A stretch of 63,525 bases of DNA, counting the filler, from Hyphochytrium catenoides (taxonomy: Eukaryota > Protista > Hyphochytriomycota), in NCBI GenBank assembly GCA_900088475.1. It is 8 parts of 8 records of this genome, joined end to end, with 100 filler letters (N's around TTAATTAATTAA, not from the genome) between each part and the next. Parts side by side here need not be neighbours in the genome. Positions count along the whole stretch, not along the records: positions 1 to 15,894 come from FLMG01002700.1; 7 more parts are not named here. The stretch is one strand, 5' to 3'. The position numbers were made by a program, and so were the translations under genes. This document shows, one piece after another, positions 1,900 through 15,169 of this stretch; within the stretch, counting starts at the first letter, position 1; each line of letters starts with the position of its first letter. The notes beneath the pieces are model-generated. The model was not told where the DNA came from. It ran no database searches and saw nothing but the letters and a program-made list of their open reading frames with translations.

Positions 1900-3926
1900 G
1901 ACAGTAGGCTTATGACGCACTTTTCTTTCTCTGCCGTTATCAGCTCGATCTGGTCCCGGGCAACGCTGATCTCATCATTTGTCATCTTGGAAAGTAAGAG
2001 GAAATGAGAACAGCACGAGGTAGTCTTTTAGTAGTGTAAGGGTAAAGATGGACTCTTCGTAAGTCTTGGTAGGAATGCGCGCGACGCAGTGAGACAGGGA
2101 GAGAGAGAGAAGGAAAGAGCGGAGTGTGGAGCTGTGGACAAGGCACAGAGAGAAATCGAAGAGAGATGGCACAGAGGTCGCGGCTGCGCAGGCAAATCCG
2201 GTAAATTAGTAGTGGGAGACCTGAATTTCCTTCATCAGCTTCATCATCTCCTCTTCCTTCTGCAGGAACTTTTCCTTGACGACCTCGTAGTCATCAATGC
2301 CTGGATACTGACTCTAAACCGGGGAAGGCCGAGAGGATGAAGAGGACGGAAGAGCGCAGCGTGCCGAGCGTGATGTGAGCCAATAGGGCCGACCAAAAGA
2401 AAGGCAAAGATTGAAGATTGAGAGAGAGAGGGAGAGAGAGAGAGCATTAACCCTAAGCCTGATAGAGAGATGGTAGCAGCTGGCAACTCTGGTGACTCTC
2501 TCCCTCTCTAACTGTCTCTGTGTGCGCATTTCTCCGCTCCGTCGCACTTCCTCCATCTCACCGTACCAGAATAGAGGCGAAGGCCTGCTCGTACTGCTCT
2601 GGAGTGGCCTCGATCCTTTTATGAGCATGGCCCTGCATTTAGGATATGAGAAAATGGGGGAAGGAAGCCAAGGACGAAGGAAGTCAGAGGGAGAGAGAGA
2701 GAGAGCAAAAGTAAGCGAGAGAGAGCGAAAGAGAAAAAGAGAGAGGCAAAGAAAGGAAGCGAGAGAATAGGAAAAAAAAATCACTCTCCACTCAGCTGGA
2801 AGTCGCCGAGAAGCAAGAAGATAAAAACGACGACCGCCGGAGACAGGGTCGACAATAGGGAAGAGCCAAATATGAGAAGAGGAGCGGTGAACTAGGTAGC
2901 GTACCTCTTCTCTTGCGGTGGATCCATTGTCCTGATTCTTGGTTATCAGGATGCTGCTTCTGGCAGTGGCTCGCTGGGCAGGAAGATCAAAGGTAATGGT
3001 CTGGCTCTCTTTCCAGAATTTCTCTGATGTAAGATGATAACACACGGAAAGATGGGAGTAGCATGAAGGCGTATGAGAAAAGAGAGAGAGAGAGAGGCGA
3101 AGAGCATCATGTCAGCCTCCTGCTCCTGCATGCTAAGCTGTCTCCTCTTCTTCCTGCTTCGTCTGCCCTTACTATCCTACCTGTCTCCTTCTTCTGTGCT
3201 TCAATGAGCTCTGTCAGCTCGTCATAGATCTCTTTAAAAGCGCGCTTCTCCTCTCGTGCTAGGGCGATCAGATCCTCAGTCTGGCCCACCAACTACGAAT
3301 GATATGTTGAGGGAAGGGTCGACGCATAAGAGAGGAGAAGGAAGACTGAAAGGAGAGAAAGAGAGAGGAAAGAGGTAAAAGAGAGAGACAGAGAAGGAAG
3401 ATGACGGGGAAAAAGAGGACAAAGAGACCGACAGAAACGTAGAAAGAGGAGACCAAAGAGGGAAAGCATAGGAAACAGCGTCTTTCCCCTGCTTTCCTTA
3501 CCGCATCTCTGTCCTGCATGATCTGGTCAGAGCTCTCCATAGCCTTGTCCAACATCTCCGTGTACTCTTTCAACTGGCGCTGGAACTGCAACCAGGAGAG
3601 GAGAGGGAAGTGTCAGGAAGGAGGAGTGAGCATAGGGAGGAGGGAGTCCGAAGACGAAAAGAGACGAGGGAGAGAAGAAGATAGGAAAGCGTTGATCACC
3701 GTCACGTTTTCCTCTTCCTCTTACGCTCATTCTCTACCTTGTCCTCGTACTTCCCGCTTCTACGCGGCGGTGGCTCCGTTCTTCCCTCTTTTCACTCTCG
3801 TTTAGAGTCCTCTCCTTCCATCACTATCATCTTATATCCTCTGTCCTCTCACGATATTTTTCCTCTCCATCCCTCCCTCTGTCTCTCTCTCTCTCTCTCA
3901 ACCTCTCTCTCTCAACCTCTCTCTCT

Positions 3927-3961
<35 letters not shown>

Positions 3962-3985
3962 TCTCTCTCTCTCTCTTTCTCTCTT

Positions 3986-4016
<31 letters not shown>

Positions 4017-5032
4017 TCTCTCTCTCTCTTTCCTCTCTCTCTCTACTTCAATCCAGCATACCCTTATTATTCCTTTCCTCCTCTCTTCTCCTGACGATCA
4101 CAGTCTTTCCCTTCTTTTGCTCTTTGTCAATCTAACTTTTTCCCTTTCTATAAGCCCCCTCCCTACTTCCGCATTCCCTGCCTTCCCCTGAAGAGTATCG
4201 AGTCTGTTCTGTCTCTCCTACCTTCTGATAAATTTCATCATGCGCAATCCGTACTTCTCTTCTTCTGTCAATCCTCTCCTTGAAGTTAGCATTCTCGGTC
4301 AGGGTCTCGCTCTGACGCTGTCTTGCGGCGGCCAAACGGTTCTCCAGGATTGAAAGCTGAGGGGCCGGAAGAGAGTAAGAACAAGAGAAAGAGAGAGAAC
4401 GACGACCGGTAAACCTATGGATAACGAGAAGAAGAGAAAGCAGAAGAGAGGGAGAGCGAAGAATGCGTCTAGAGAAGGAGAATAAATACATAAAGAGAAA
4501 GAGAGAGAAGAGAGAAGGACCGACCTTCTTTTGGTGTGAATGTTGGAGAGATTTAGAGGCATTTACACCTCCTCCTCTCGCATCCGCCTCTTTCCTTCTC
4601 TCTTGCTGCAGTCTGATCTCTTCCTGGACCACGTCCACTTTGTCCTAGACATGGCAGGATGTAGTGGAACGGGAGAGACGAAGATGAAGAGGCCAGGGAA
4701 GAAAAGAAGAGAGTGTTGGACGATGCGAAGATAGAGGTAAAAGCCAATAGATCACTCCTCTCACTACCCCTAAAGCGAATAAGAACGCCTAGAGGTAAAG
4801 GATAAAGAAAATGGAGAGTGGAATGGGGGAGAAGCGAGAGAGAAAGAGAGAGAGGGAGAGAAAAGAGAAAGCGAAGACGACAGAAGGACATCGCGAAGCT
4901 GTCCTGATACTATCACCTCACCTCGAGCTCCTTGAGCACTTGCCTCTGCTCAAAAATTTTTCTAGAGAGCTGGTCCCCTTGCACCTGTAGGTTGAAGACG
5001 TGATCCAGAAGAGCTTTCTTGTTCGACGCCAT
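424..5032 (-). CDS. Outer dynein arm docking complex subunit (ODA-DC2/CCDC114/CCDC63-like coiled coil), multi-exon; 3' end not resolved, probably near or beyond the window start
   Basis: Spliced peptides MASNKKALLDHVFNLQVQGDQLSRKIFEQRQVLKELE / QQERRKEADARGGGVNASK / LSILENRLAAARQRQSETLTENANFKERIDRRREVRIAHDEIYQK / LVGQTEDLIALAREEKRAF / MFGSIGC / SLGINENNVAAYME match my recollection of the ODA-DC2 pattern (GGVNA..., ILENRL...N..LR..ID..R.ER...D.IY.K, GV.E.N...Y). GT-AG introns are CT-rich. Confidence 0.75.
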
Positions 5033-9522: not shown

Positions 9523-10254
9523 CTTCTCTCTCTCTCTTTTTCTGCTATACTCTCTTCTCTCTTTTGGCTTTCGTGCCCGGTGATATAATGAGCTAAGTTA
9601 GTTTATCGTCGACGCATCGTCTCCTTTATATAAGACAAGAGAGCCTGTCATTCCAGACGAGGTGTGAGAAGAGCTCAAAGGCCGAGGGAGGTGTTGTCCT
9701 GCAACTCTTTCTTGCAATACCATCCTCTGCCTGCACCTCCCTCTCTCCACTCTCTTCAACCTCTCGCTTCGTGCTCTCGTTGTGCTCTGTTTGTACTCTC
9801 TTTGTGCTCTCTGCGCTCTCTCTCTCTCTCTCTCTCTCTCCCTCTCTCTCCCTCTCNNNNNNNNNNNNNNNTCCTAGCCGTTAGCGGTAAGCCATCATCA
9901 AATTGTTCAGAACAAGCTTTTCTTGAGCCTAGAACTACTCACACCACGAGACAGAGCAAGTTAAAGAGATGTCAATCTACAGCACTAGCATGGGATGAAC
10001 CTCGAGGAAGAGAGACGGAGAGACATGACTAGAAGAACTAAGATGCGATGATGAAGCGACCGACGGCAAGCGCAGACCTCTCAGGGCGCTGACAGAGGGA
10101 ACAGGAAGCGGAGCAAGGTAGAGACGAAGAGCAGAGCAAGGAGTAGAAGGACAGACAAGGAAGAAGCGATAAAACGCCGAAGACGAAGAAAAGCAGAGAG
10201 TAGACAGGATAGAGAGAGGAGACCTGAGTCGTGCCGAATTGTTACTTAACAGCA

Positions 10255-13200
10255 TGGCCTCCCCAGGCGAAGCCACAGCGTGGAAGGCGGTTCTGGTCAG
10301 CTCCGTGGCTGTTGCCGCCATAGGAGCAGCTTCTTGGCCCCTGATCCAGCACTATAGACACAAGGACGAAGGGTAAGGGAAGTCAAACATCGAGATAAAG
10401 AGATACAACGAGCGCAGCCCCTACGTCTTCTCTATGTCTCTGCCTCTCTCTATCTCTTTCACTGACTATTCACCCGATCTTCACTCAGCACCAAGTCAGC
10501 TCTCCCCTTTAACGCTGTTTCTGTCACTGCGTTCGAAATCCGTCCCTTTGTCTAGTGGTAAAAAGCTCTTTGTGTTCGGACTCGGCTATTGCGGAGTGCG
10601 GGCAGCGATAGAGTTCCGGCGCCAGGGCTTTCGAGTGGCGGGAACAGTTCGCAGCCATACCGCAGCTAAGGAGCTAAGGAGTAAAGAAGGTAGGAGGAGG
10701 AGTAATGAACAGAGAGAGAGAGTCACGTAAGCATCAAGTGTGAAGAGAAAGAGAGAGAAATTGACAAGGCGAGTCCATTATGGCGCCGGTTCCAGAGATG
10801 CTATTGGAGAATACGGAGAAGCTTTCATCGGTGCCGTCAGTGGTGCTGTGGGAGATAGACAGCCATATCCTTGCGCACTCCCCTTCTCTTTGTCAGTCCA
10901 ATTCCTTGCTCTTCTCACCCTTCTTCTCCGCCTTCTTAATTATCGTCCTTCATCCCTCGCCTTCCTTCCTCTTCTCGAACTTCTCTCTCTTCTACGCATC
11001 AGGCATTGAGACGCATGTCTTCAGCGACACCTCACCCTTGAAAGATCCAGAGAAGGTCCTCAGGGGCGTGACTCATATTCTCATTACTGCCCCACCCACA
11101 AAAGACGGAGATCCCGTGCTCTCGTCCACCCTAAAAGATGCTCTCTTGAGCCTGGAGGGGGTTGAGTGGGTCGGTTATCTCTCTACTACTGCCGTTTATG
11201 GTGACTGGTGAGGGCGTTTCTTCTCTTGCACGTCCTGCCTCCGTCAACTCGCCTCTTGCTTGGCTTCCCTTCTGTCTAGTCTATAGTTCGGCATACTCTT
11301 CCCTCTCTCTTCTGATGGCTTCTCTTTCTTAGATGTCAAGCTTCTGCTCTGTGTATCTCTCTGTCTTGCATTCTCCTGTCTTCTGCCACCACTAGCTGGA
11401 TGCCCAATTGGTCCTTACTATTGCCGCTTCTCAACAATCTCCTGGTAGTGGTGGCGGTGTGGTGGAGGAAGATAGCCCTTTGCAGCCTATGAGCACTAGA
11501 GGCCGCCTCAGGGTGCTAGCTGAGGAGCAGTGGCGAACGTCTGGTCTCCCAGTCCACATCTTTAGGCTCCCGGGCATATATGGACCAGGTGGGAACTGAG
11601 GAACAGAGGACGACCGAGAGGCTCAAGGGGAAGGAAGGGCGCTTTAGGATTTTGAAGCATAGAGGGGGAGACGGGAGAGAAAGTGAGGCAGCAAGTGCCA
11701 GGAAAGAAGAGACAAGAAGGGTTGGAAACGAAGTTTAGGCATAGATGTGGAGAGCTTCGCCAATCTCTTTGCTCTGCTGTCTCCCCTGCTTCTCGACCCC
11801 GTCCTCTCTTCTTCTATCTGTTGCGCCCTCTCTACTCTCTGATCTCTTTTCCTCCTACTAGAGCTAACTCTTTCTCTCTTATAGGACGTGGTACAATACC
11901 GAAGGTGAGGGAAGGGACAGCTCGTCGGATACTGAAGGAAGGACAAGTCTTTAACAGGATTCATGTCGATGACATCGTGCAAGCTCTAACTCTATCAGCT
12001 GCCGCACCCAAAGCTGGTGAGGACTCTCCCTGGACGACCTCCTTTCTCGAAGTTTCTTAAATGTATTATAATCTCTGACTCCGTGATTGTTTTAGCTCTT
12101 CCTCTTAAAGCTCTGCCATCGATCTCAGTATCTGGACGATCTCTACTGGTTGAAAGTGTCGTCGTCAATTACCTATAGAGTTAGACTCCCTGTCCTAAGT
12201 TAGATCTTTGTGTGTGCCCCTCCAGGCTCAATATACAATGTAGCTGACGACTATCCATGCTCACCCGCTGAGCCTGTGGAATTTGCGGCCAAACTGCTCA
12301 AAATGCAGCCTCCTCCTGCTGTGCCGTGGGAAGAGGCAGAAAAAGAGATGTCAGCCATGGCCCGAAGCTTCTACAGTGAGAGCAAGAGAGCAAGCAACAA
12401 GAAGATAAAGACAGAGCTGGGTCTTAAGCTCAAATATCCGACATACAGGTACACGACAGAATAAGCTTCTTTCTTCCGTGGACGTTATGAGGCTGCCGAC
12501 ACTCAGCTCTTCTGGTTGTTTAGGTCAAAAACAAATAATACTTGCTCTGCTGTCAAGGAACGCTTTCTTCTGCTCGGCTGTCCCCGCTAGGGGAACTGTT
12601 AGCTTGCTGTCGCTAACTTACCTGTGCTGCAGGGAAGGTTTTGTCGCCCAGCTTGTCGAAGAAGAAGCTAGGGAAATGGAGAAGACGCTGTCATGGTCTG
12701 CCAGTCTTGACCGCCTCCTTTCCCACCTTCCGACCTGGAAGCGCGAACCCAAGCTTCAATACCTGCTCGTAGATGTGGGCTCGCTGGCTCCCGGTGAGGA
12801 GATAGACGGGGCGTCATATTATGTTTTACTTTTGAGCTTACACGAATCTGTTCGTGCTCAATATAACTTTTCATGTCGCTTGTGTCTGATATGGATACTC
12901 TGATGGAGGGAACGGGGTAGGACTGCTGAGTTCTTCTTTCTCTCGTGTCGTTCTGTGACGGTCCGAAATGTGCTCTCGAGTGGATTAGCTTATGTCCTTC
13001 AGACGCTGCCTCTCGATCGACCTTGATGTATTCACTCTCATCTTTTCTCTTCACCCTTGCTGCAGGAGCAACCCTCAACTTACGCCAACTTGCAACCATA
13101 CTCCAGCAGAAAGTAGGAAAGGATGGCGAGGTCCACGCATGCTCTTGCAGGTTTGCTGACAAAATAGACAAGGAGAGCCTGGGTGGCGAACCGGCAGAGT

Positions 13201-14566
13201 TATTACAGCCGCTTATGGAGCGCTTACTGAGCACAGGTCGGCTTTGTTTTTATGGCCTAATAGCCTAATAGCCCATTCGGTCTGTGTACTGAGTGCCCCA
13301 AGTATGCAGTCTTTGGTCTACCCTTTCAGAGACTTCAGACATTAGTTCTCACTAGAGCATATCTACAGCCTGGCTGAAGAGAAGTCGCCTTGGAGTTAGC
13401 ATTCTCGAAGCCTTCGTGTCCTTGGGTCAGCTTATTGCTAAAAAGCAGTGGTCTAAGCCTTTCTCTCACATCTTTAGGTCAAGGAAAAGAGTTCATCATC
13501 CTACCCCTCATGTTTGGGCCTACGAAGACCTTGACTGAGTTCATTCCCCAAAGGGTGGCCCAAATTCGACGATCGTGGCCCGAGGTCAGGGTCCACGTTG
13601 CAGGTAGGAGATGTAGGGATAACGGTTTAACCAGCATGCTTCCGTGGATTCTCTATGGCTTGGGTGCATACATGAGGATCGTGAGCATTTGCGGGGAACT
13701 GTGTTACGCTCCTCTTCCTTTCTTTAGGAGAGTTGAGTATGGTCCTCCTGGTTGTCCTTGGATGTCACATAATGTTTCAACAACCCTCACATCCGTCACT
13801 CGGATGCGCTCTTTCTGCTGTCTGGTTGCCCTTTTCTGGCAATAGAGCCTATCATTACCAAGAAGCAGGAGGACAATCGCGTAGCCCTTATACTGAAGGA
13901 CCGGTTACTGGAGCAGGCGGCTAAGGTGCCTCTTTTCTCATTGACCGAGATTACCGTGGTACTGGTGGATCATGGCTCTCCTAGCAAGGATGTGACTGCG
14001 GTGAGGGACTTTGTCGCTGCACAATTGACCGACACCATTGGCTCTGAGGTAAAGTACAAAGAGGAGAAGCAATCTGGAAGTATATGCGCTGGTCGGCTTT
14101 CCCCTCTCTTCCCTATCAACCACCTTATCAGCATGTTCGCTATTGCGCACTAATTGGAAGCTCTGGCCTGTCGGCAACCATCTCTCCTTTGTTTTAAATA
14201 GTTATATATTCGCCTGTATCTGTGTAGGTTCGCAAAGTCATCGCCTCTTCGATGGAGCGTCGCGAGGGGGAAGAGTATGCCTTCAATGAGCCTCTTCTAG
14301 AAAGTGTCTTTGAGCAGGAGGAAGCTAAGGCGGATGAGGAAAGAGCATCGGCGTATGTGGTGCTGCCTCTGTTCTTCTCTCCTGGACGTCATGCTGGACC
14401 TGACGGTGACATTGCTCAGATAGTGGAGAGAGTAAAAAACAAGTTCACCACAGCAGGAGTTCTCCCTCCTACGATCCTCTTGGGCAATGTGCTGGGCTCC
14501 CATCAACTGCTGGTAGACATTCTTTATGATCGACTCATGGACACGGCCGGCCACAAGACGCTGTAG
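10255..14566 (+). CDS. Fusion protein: N-terminal hydrophobic anchor + atypical SDR/NAD-dependent epimerase-dehydratase (YeeZ-like) + two-lobed CbiX/SirB-type class II chelatase; multi-exon
   Basis: Epimerase motifs: LFVFGLGYCG, VGYLSTTAVYGD, FRLPGIYGPG, FNRIHVDDI, YNVADD, SFYSESKRASNKKIK, LKYPTYREG. Chelatase motifs: LLVDVGSLAP, ATLNLRQLA, ILPLMFGP, VVLVDHGSP, SMERREGEEYAFNEPLLE, LPLFFSPGRHAGPDGDI. Exon 12633-12793 runs without a stop from the epimerase end into the chelatase start. Confidence 0.85.
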
Positions 14567-15097
14567 GGATGCAAGTCGAGTAGACGAGCTTCTAGGTGAC
14601 ATGTCGAAGGAAGAGCGGTCGACTGACAGCCTTAGGAGGTGGGACAAAAGTGTGAGTACACAAAAAGACTACAAAGCTGGCTGCTCTGAGTAGCGAATAT
14701 TGGTATATCTGGGCGGTTCCTACGTTCCCTGGAGAGTGGCGGTGGATGTCAAGTTTCCAGGAGGATAGAGAGGACAATGGGAATAAGCCTTTTGGAAGGT
14801 TGTAGAGCCTTGCGTCAGGTCACTAGGAGAAACAGGCGTCGAGAGGAGAAAGAGGAAGAAAGAAGTGAAAAATGAATAGAGATGGGCAGGCTTCGGCCGC
14901 TGCTTCTGTACTGTCAACTGTGGAAGAGCCCACTTGTAGAGCCTTACGCGCATCTGATAGGATGGACGAAGATAGAAGACAATCCCCTTATCTCCCAAGG
15001 AGACAGACGAAGGGAAGCGCCTATTTGCTGACAGAAAATGCAAAGGACCGAATCGTTCGTATGCAACTCTTCGCTTTATTCTTATCCTTGTCCTCCG

Positions 15098-15169
15098 GGT
15101 AGCCACTGGGACTTGAACCCAGGTCTCTACGTAGACAACGTAGCGTACTGACCACTATACGACAACTAC
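15098..15169 (-). tRNA. tRNA gene, anticodon GTC (nominally Asp), with atypical identity elements
   Basis: Minus strand folds to a full cloverleaf: GTAGTTG TC GTAT AGTGGTCA GTAC G CTACG TT-GTC-TA CGTAG AGAC CTGGG TTCAAGT CCCAG TGGCTAC C. A-box and B-box (GGTTCAAGTCC) are present. Confidence 0.85.

Follow-up and report, generated by a model that had tools for sequence, protein, structure and literature searches.

Structure of the fusion gene

The window analysed here, a 63,525-nucleotide stretch of Hyphochytrium catenoides DNA (assembly GCA_900088475.1) made of eight parts joined end to end, holds at positions 10254-14566, on the plus strand, a gene of 11 exons that joins a Rossmann-fold domain of the short-chain dehydrogenase/reductase (SDR) type to a CbiX/SirB-like chelatase. 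In a hand-built and script-checked model, the exons join into a stop-free frame of 650 codons that begins with an ATG at 10254-10256, one base ahead of the start at 10255 given by an initial annotation of this DNA, and ends with a TAG whose last base is 14566; all 10 introns are of the GT..AG type, measure 179-313 nt, and leave the exon phases consistent. We favour the reading that a single nuclear gene here encodes a two-enzyme protein of ~650 residues, in which the chelatase half makes sirohaem and the Rossmann half has a role of its own, and we hold this explanation, judged jointly with all its parts, to be fairly probable.

Exon 1 (10254..10372), an open reading frame (ORF) closed by the donor GTAAGG, contains the start codon and extends the N-terminus by 39 residues, with ~10278-10343 coding for a hydrophobic segment. 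The SDR half (residues ~44-330) starts in exon 2 (10556..10689), which covers Rossmann β1-αA-β2 with GLGYCG at 10578-10595 and then GTVRS and gives weak NAD-binding Pfam matches, and it continues through exon 3 (11003..11207; SDR core including D121 and the W140-GYLSTTAVYGD segment), exon 4 (11449..11588; the SDR ‘active-site’ helix R170-x3-R174-x3-E178 at 11498-11524, and FRLPGIYGP), exon 5 (11885..12016; a substrate-side segment with GRGT... and FNRIHVDD), and exon 6 (12226..12448; the C-terminal part with IYNVADD ... MARSFY ... LKYPTY). Exon 7 (12633..12793), the fusion exon, is one uninterrupted frame, colinear with orthologues, and runs from the last SDR helix (REGFVAQL) through a linker of ~30 residues to the strand that opens chelatase lobe 1 (LLVDVGSLAP, with VDVGS at 12769-12783). 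The initial annotation had placed the end of an epimerase and the start of a chelatase, (R)EGFVAQL ... YLLVDVGSLAP, in this single exon, and the exon reads as it said; since the domain junction lies within the exon, the fusion needs no guessed splice. The two-lobed chelatase half (residues ~360-645) is completed by exon 8 (13066..13236; lobe 1 helix, strand, and loop), exon 9 (13478..13603; lobe 1 with PLMFGPTK, FGPTK at 13513-13527, and no His at the position that holds one in lobe 2), exon 10 (13846..14048; the end of lobe 1 and the start of lobe 2 with VLVDHGSP, where Asp512-His513 occupies 13968-13973 and His513 of VDHGS 13971-13973), and exon 11 (14228..14566; lobe 2 with SMERR, YAFNEPLL, PLFFSPGRHAGPDGDI, which includes His593 of PGRH at 14390-14392, and the stop codon).

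Single exons suffice to recognise both halves: exon 11 alone scores 35.1 bits against Pfam CbiX (PF01903; cut-off 22), and exon 9 reaches 15.3 bits, under threshold. Single-exon Pfam scans of the SDR half were mostly uninformative, with no exon of the gene reaching the PF01370 threshold; exon 6 alone matches the solved structure 3IUS of the Protein Data Bank (PDB) at E 1e-16 (63.8 bits, phmmer). ORFs on the minus strand across the locus gave no family match.

Conservation and distribution of the fusion

The joined model aligns with orthologue P0023 (642 aa) over 640 columns at 43% identity, covering model residues 43-649, and the exon junctions are free of indels in the orthologue alignment. 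An exhaustive phmmer search with the last exon retrieved many two-lobed proteins of ~285 aa together with a set of proteins of 600-760 aa, and the latter are Epimerase plus CbiX by Pfam. This annotated pair occurs in Phytophthora, Pythium, Globisporangium, Lagenidium, Peronospora, Bremia, Plasmopara, Albugo, Saprolegnia, Achlya, and Aphanomyces, with about 50 oomycete database entries carrying the architecture, and a protein of the labyrinthulomycete Hondaea has the same two domains; a profile-based survey added no further named taxa beyond oomycetes. The SDR half of orthologues P0002, P0020, and P0133 scores 23-29 bits on PF01370 (cut-off 20.9). On one intron-free metagenomic contig, the whole fusion is a single uninterrupted ORF of 554 aa, which aligns with model residues 44-640 in one tblastn segment (41% identity, E 8e-128) and has eukaryote-type neighbours (TTL, dynein light intermediate chain, WW, PDZ); on this contig, therefore, the fusion is independent of any splice prediction. 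The fusion proposed for this locus is, by these comparisons, real: it is colinear and similar from end to end with its orthologues, well past anything that chance would produce.

Evolutionarily, the two halves agree. Quick, unrooted maximum-likelihood trees, one for each half, both keep the eukaryotic sequences together and place the Hyphochytrium protein as sister to oomycetes plus P0206 (Shimodaira–Hasegawa-like approximate likelihood ratio test support of 86 and 94), so that the domain-by-domain trees proposed in the initial annotation give one placement, and this agreement fits one old, vertically inherited fusion. In the unrooted trees, eukaryotic and verrucomicrobial sequences form the two sides of one branch, and no donor is claimed. 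The architecture itself is already in public protein sets, some entries bearing the Joint Genome Institute label ‘nucleoside-diphosphate-sugar epimerase/sirohydrochlorin ferrochelatase’, and in this respect the novelty of the fusion is limited; in the literature, we found no study or characterisation of it, nor of sirohaem in oomycetes or stramenopiles, of queG with an epimerase, or of 3IUS.

Structurally, a prediction of the full-length orthologue has a predicted local distance difference test (pLDDT) of 91.7, a predicted template-modelling score (pTM) of 0.78, and a low-confidence hinge of only 5 residues, which hints at two domains held in a fixed arrangement.

The chelatase half

By signature, the Hyphochytrium protein and its orthologues belong to a Verrucomicrobia-type, two-lobed, CbiX-like subfamily. 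In a 43-member alignment, lobe 1 of this subfamily reads LLVDNGS and PLFFGPS and has no His, and lobe 2 reads VDHGSP, SMERR, YxFNEPLLE, and PGRHAGPGGDI, with the Asp and His of VDHGS and the His of PGRH invariant. The motifs VDVGS, FGPTK, VDHGS, and PGRH that had been noted at this locus are all there, and the His pair is, as described, in the second lobe only; across the aligned sequences, placement of both His in the second lobe is the rule for the subfamily. The Hyphochytrium protein retains every lobe-2 invariant, including Asp512-His513 and His593, and 40 of the 46 chelatase positions (87%) that are conserved in at least 90% of the family; on a related list with an 88% threshold, its departures are N366V, F440M, S444T, and L535I. 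The half was also correctly described as bacterial in type, the sole non-eukaryotic relatives found being from Verrucomicrobiota.

Database models place this half at a distance from known enzymes: no NCBIfam model reaches its cut-off for either half of the fusion, and a bacterial homologue of the chelatase gave no phmmer match in the PDB, so that the only links of the subfamily to SirB and CbiX come from the family profile, which finds both in the PDB at ~1e-5, and from fold searches. An AlphaFold2 model of P0023:335-642 (pLDDT 91.7, pTM 0.89) retrieved Bacillus subtilis SirB first with Foldseek (E 9e-10, template-modelling score 0.75 by target), followed by CbiK, DR2241, FetB, HemH/protoporphyrin ferrochelatases, and Paracoccus CbiX (4CCS). 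At the level of a predicted structure, the class II chelatase fold is confirmed for this orthologue, which speaks against the possibility, raised with the initial annotation, that the C-terminal half might fold otherwise. His593 aligns with a His, perhaps the catalytic one, of the HGIH motif in 6m2a, a CbiXS-derived chimeric chain. In a further protein, P0081 (726 aa), a weak CbiX-like C-terminus comes after CS and TPR domains, which would be another fusion partner of the chelatase-like family.

Functionally, the chelatase half would be an ATP-independent class II enzyme with His513 and His593 of lobe 2 as active residues and with lobe 1 lining the opposite side of the tetrapyrrole cleft, the arrangement of Paracoccus CbiX and CbiK, and it would most likely insert Fe2+ into sirohydrochlorin to yield sirohaem for assimilatory sulfite and nitrite reductases.

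Among characterised enzymes, a close parallel in the arrangement of lobes is CbiX of the alphaproteobacterium Paracoccus pantotrophus, a proven sirohaem ferrochelatase with essential His127 and His187 in its C-terminal half (PMC4063343). It shares the two lobes and the C-terminal His pair with the fusion chelatase, but hardly any similarity in sequence: its structure (PDB 4CCS) is not retrieved by the family profile at E up to 1 and ranks 44th with Foldseek at 11% identity. The Paracoccus enzyme also lacks the SMERR/FNEPLL insert and is unfused. SirB of B. subtilis (PDB 5ZT7-5ZTA) has the same fold and substrate class as the fusion chelatase, yet in SirB and in CbiXL of B. megaterium the active-site residues lie in the N-terminal lobe (PMC4063343), whereas those of the fusion chelatase would lie in the C-terminal lobe, and identity is 13-16%. 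The CbiK proteins of Salmonella and Desulfovibrio are alike in fold and in having catalytic His in the C-terminal domain, a placement in which CbiK resembles Paracoccus CbiX and differs from SirB and CbiXL (PMC4063343), but CbiK is a cobaltochelatase of anaerobic B12 synthesis. Met8p, CysG (CysGB), and SirC likewise join a nucleotide-binding Rossmann module to the metal-insertion step of sirohaem synthesis; Met8p and CysG, though, use one Rossmann-type active site for both steps, whereas the fusion has two domains, one of them a relative of extended SDRs. Plant SirB (At1g50170 type) likewise belongs to the CbiX superfamily and serves a eukaryote as sirohydrochlorin ferrochelatase. It is small, of the single-lobe type, and carries an Fe-S cluster, and the fusion chelatase differs from it in being two-lobed, without the Cys cluster, and fused to an SDR. 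Brown algae carry the plant-type SirB (PMC2567999). By analogy, the Hyphochytrium protein would resemble SirB and Paracoccus CbiX in action, but by sequence it falls in neither family, and its chelatase half is best placed in a separate, uncharacterised subfamily shared with Verrucomicrobiota.

The Rossmann-fold half

The partner of the chelatase was described in the initial annotation as an orphan Rossmann enzyme, a description that holds: the SDR half of P0023 is ~50% identical to alphaproteobacterial ‘SDR family oxidoreductases’ of ~285 aa, a family with at least 7,984 matches in Rhodobacterales, Hyphomicrobiales, and others, and its closest solved relative, 3IUS (286 aa; P0023 match at E 8.7e-74), was deposited as an ‘uncharacterized conserved protein’ and yielded no paper in our literature search. 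Conservation within the 3IUS family is high, with 92 positions conserved in at least 95% of sequences, and 76 of these 92 are kept in the Hyphochytrium protein. The GxGxxG/A motif of the family takes the form GLGYCG at residues 48-53; at least 92% of the bacterial rows share G48, G50, T70, and R72. Without exception, the bacterial family has R170, R174, and E178, and nearly all 58 aligned fusions keep these three residues. The catalytic Tyr-x3-Lys of extended SDRs is not present in the Hyphochytrium SDR half, and R170-x3-R174 presumably stands in the place of the canonical YxxxK. With RxxxR in place of YxxxK, the half is, by this positional mapping, an atypical extended SDR rather than a classical epimerase/dehydratase. 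The T-x-R after strand β2 we take as a mark of NADP(H) rather than NAD+, and nine conserved arginines suggest an anionic substrate; the SDR half would thus probably bind NADP(H) and a strongly anionic substrate.

In bacteria, the gene context of this family varies. The seven bacterial SDR contexts contain no sirohaem genes: three lie near dxs-ispA, two have other neighbours, and in two the SDR gene and the stop of queG share 4 bp, a translational coupling exemplified by the alphaproteobacterial locus L087 (4883-6873). Three proteins (P0215, P0217, P0219) are fusions of the SDR with QueG, the epoxyqueuosine reductase, P0215 scoring 440 bits on the QueG model, and we found no description of a QueG-SDR link in the literature. 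Bacterial members of the 3IUS family are thus standalone proteins, encoded next to queG in some loci, or form fusions with QueG, whereas the SDR considered here is joined to a chelatase. Conversely, tblastn found no 3IUS-like gene within 10 kb of 83 bacterial loci with a chelatase homologue, nearly all of them verrucomicrobial, so that the idea that the bacterial homologues of the two halves might be neighbours is rejected for Verrucomicrobiota.

Gene context and motif decay point to sirohaem

A scan of bacteria and archaea, using one genome per species, found 506 loci that encode relatives of the chelatase, and we examined gene context in the best ~80 by clustering the neighbouring ORFs and scanning representatives; these best 80 are nearly all from Verrucomicrobiota. 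One of the best bacterial loci, L021, is labelled Thermodesulfobacteriota and groups tightly with Rubritalea (Verrucomicrobiota), a label that may reflect a binning error or a recent transfer. At 13-14 of 81 loci, mainly in Opitutaceae, the chelatase homologue abuts a TP_methylase gene (uroporphyrinogen-III methyltransferase), in some pairs with overlapping stop and start, and this pair adjoins a cluster of sulfite reductase (NIR_SIR)-cysH-cysD-cysN. In addition, P0120 is a fusion of TP_methylase with a CbiX-like domain, and the standalone relative P0052 lies beside TP_methylase and 3′-phosphoadenosine-5′-phosphosulfate (PAPS) reductase. At locus L092 (557-5513), the TP_methylase and PAPS-reductase genes beside a standalone chelatase relative are both split into two gene calls, possibly a sign of an intron-bearing eukaryotic cluster of sirohaem and sulfate genes. 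No cobalamin context was seen for the subfamily.

A second line of evidence, independent of the first, comes from oomycetes, where decay was measured by counting, for each orthologue, the retained residues that are invariant in the bacterial families. Phytophthora, Pythium, Globisporangium, and Lagenidium keep 78-85% of the chelatase positions and 83-89% of the SDR positions, whereas Peronospora belbahrii, Hyaloperonospora, Peronosclerospora, Bremia, Plasmopara, and Albugo, in which the His motifs are destroyed, keep 20-63% of the chelatase positions and 78-87% of the SDR positions. The first His is replaced by Arg in Saprolegnia and Achlya, and Aphanomyces has lost MERR and GRH; altogether, degenerate chelatases with an intact SDR characterise P0188, P0190, P0192, P0193, P0194, P0207, and P0198-P0204, that is, most downy mildews, Albugo, and Saprolegniales. 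Across all lineages compared, 72-89% of the SDR invariants are kept. The Hyphochytrium protein, with 87% of chelatase and 83% of SDR positions, looks functional in both halves. The biotrophic oomycetes Plasmopara, Hyaloperonospora, and Albugo are reported to be without nitrite and sulfite reductase (PMC5394536), and Saprolegnia parasitica is reported to have lost nitrate, nitrite, and sulfite reductase (PMC3681718); we assume the same loss, from lifestyle or kinship, in Bremia, Peronosclerospora, P. belbahrii, Achlya, and Aphanomyces. Decay of the chelatase half thus coincides with the reported absence of the only known sirohaem enzymes. Since this decay goes with reductase loss and leaves the SDR intact, the chelatase half most likely makes sirohaem, a role already suggested for it from the sequence of this locus and now well supported by bacterial gene context also, and the SDR half would have its own role. 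The constraint on the SDR half in oomycetes that have no need of sirohaem further argues that its main role is not only the supply of sirohydrochlorin, and we infer that this role would be independent of sirohaem.

Several observations weigh against this reading. The downy mildews Peronospora farinosa and P. destructor keep their chelatase motifs intact, and the sirohaem/sulfate context is found at just ~1/6 of the verrucomicrobial loci. In the Hyphochytrium protein itself, Val replaces the Asn present in 98% of the family (DNGS to DVGS), and lobe 1 has two further changes (F440M and S444T). The predicted fold is that of an orthologue 43% identical to the Hyphochytrium protein, the splicing and expression of the gene would follow the model by homology, and we found no characterised member of either the chelatase subfamily or the 3IUS family. 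Finally, retention of the fusion in oomycetes, a labyrinthulomycete, and Hyphochytrium, together with the pTM of 0.78, hints at functional coupling of the halves, a coupling that the favoured explanation leaves unexplained.

Alternative explanations

The fusion could be an analogue of Met8/CysG, as the initial annotation proposed, with the SDR half oxidising precorrin-2 to sirohydrochlorin and delivering the product to the chelatase; alphaproteobacteria would then have their ‘missing’ precorrin-2 dehydrogenase in the 3IUS family. By Rosetta-stone logic, consecutive steps are often fused, and here the fusion appears old, is colinear in both halves, and has a full-length orthologue modelled with a pTM of 0.78. 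An octacarboxylate substrate would fit the nine conserved arginines, alphaproteobacteria very commonly carry the SDR family, and the Paracoccus genome is reported to have no candidate for a precorrin-2 dehydrogenase (PMC4063343). Look-alike clusters from cyanobacteria and Streptophyta in the ESM Atlas offer a lead only, and to our knowledge a precorrin-2 dehydrogenase has never been identified in plants. What makes this alternative unlikely is that the SDR half is fully conserved in oomycetes without sirohaem enzymes while the chelatase decays, which disfavours a role like that of CysG/Met8; 3IUS-like genes are missing within 10 kb of the 83 bacterial loci with a chelatase homologue, nearly all verrucomicrobial, and the seven SDR contexts in turn lack sirohaem genes, with queG as the neighbour in two of them. 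Moreover, the T-x-R motif suggests NADP(H) and not NAD+, the SDR Tyr/Lys pair is absent, and neither the exons of the gene nor full-length orthologues have a Pfam match to NAD_binding_7 or another Met8/SirC/CysG-type family, so that no homology to these dehydrogenases was detected. The most far-reaching form of the idea, in which the Rossmann protein of the 3IUS family is a precorrin-2 dehydrogenase that has so far escaped recognition and the fusion is its Rosetta stone, we regard as similarly unlikely; if true, the fusion would be a non-homologous equivalent of Met8p/CysG, and a second role would be required to explain why sirohaem-free oomycetes retain the Rossmann protein. Salvage of cobamides, also raised in the initial annotation, found no direct evidence here.

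The queG link invites another explanation, in which the SDR half acts in queuosine or cobalamin-dependent tRNA modification and the chelatase-like half handles a corrinoid or other tetrapyrrole instead of sirohaem. We know of no eukaryotic QueG partner, and five of the seven SDR contexts are without queG. Although QueG is itself cobalamin-dependent (PMC4646009) and is coupled to the SDR both by overlapping genes and by fused proteins, the contexts of the chelatase subfamily are those of sirohaem and sulfate assimilation rather than cobalamin, and chelatase decay follows the loss of sirohaem enzymes; we therefore consider this explanation quite improbable. Equally, the chelatase half of the Hyphochytrium protein could be a non-catalytic module for tetrapyrrole binding or regulation, leaving activity to the SDR half alone, as its lobe 1 deviates at three near-invariant positions, including the Asn to Val change in DNGS, and several relatives with dead chelatase halves retain the fusion. 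The lobe-2 invariants, both His, and MERR/FNEP are, however, intact, and the 40 of 46 positions kept exceed retention in Phytophthora, so this is very improbable. Last, alternative promoters or polyadenylation sites, or an assembly error, might make two separate genes or transcripts look like a single one: this is a draft assembly with runs of N close to the gene, and the one-transcript reading derives from sequence comparison. The junction inside one exon with an open frame, the colinear orthologues, and the orthologue encoded by a single intron-free ORF make such a misreading extremely improbable.

If, as we favour, the chelatase half makes sirohaem, the fusion chelatase is a concrete candidate enzyme for completing sirohaem in oomycetes, labyrinthulomycetes, and Hyphochytrium, groups in which we found no enzyme described for this final step. 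The comparisons also delineate a subfamily of class II chelatases, present in Verrucomicrobiota as well, none of whose members is characterised, and they draw attention to 3IUS, an unstudied family of alphaproteobacterial proteins that is highly conserved and very widespread. It has been fused independently to a sirohaem chelatase and to QueG, and these two partners provide two testable leads to its function. Additionally, the lineage-wise decay of one half amounts to a natural experiment that separates the functions of both, and decay of the chelatase could mark the loss of sulfate and nitrate assimilation in parasites.

N-terminal segment and genomic surroundings

A hydrophobic N-terminus, proposed in the initial annotation to suggest membrane or organelle targeting, is present at residues ~9-30 (Kyte-Doolittle 19-residue maximum of 1.95), but a comparable segment was found in just one of 22 inspected fusion proteins, the metagenomic P0209, and the oomycete fusion proteins begin directly at the Rossmann fold. 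The segment may be a signal anchor or signal peptide. An AAS|W site at the N-terminus resembles the heterokont ASAFAP cleavage motif (PMC2567999) and is followed by a stretch of only ~14 residues; a bipartite plastid signal is a possibility.

Downstream, a tRNA-Asp(GTC) gene lies at 15097-15169 on the minus strand, ~530 bp past the stop codon (Rfam 52.5 bits, ARAGORN), and Rfam found nothing else at the locus. The tRNA-Asp(GUC) is a queuosine-carrying tRNA, and we take its proximity to the fusion gene to be a coincidence. Upstream, at ~3268-4638 on the minus strand, lie coiled-coil exons, of which 4135-4638 gives a sub-threshold match to Pfam ODAD1_CC (24.3 bits, cut-off 27); ODAD1 belongs to the outer dynein arm docking complex, and the ODAD1-like exon suggests a separate upstream gene of a flagellated organism. 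The genome stretch is intron-rich, with ~50% GC and CT/GA-rich non-coding DNA: introns and intergenic DNA are filled by low-complexity CT/GA tracts (for example 150-460, 1600-1920, 3740-4190, and 9660-9900), which translate as SLSLSL, and by short N runs that mark assembly gaps.

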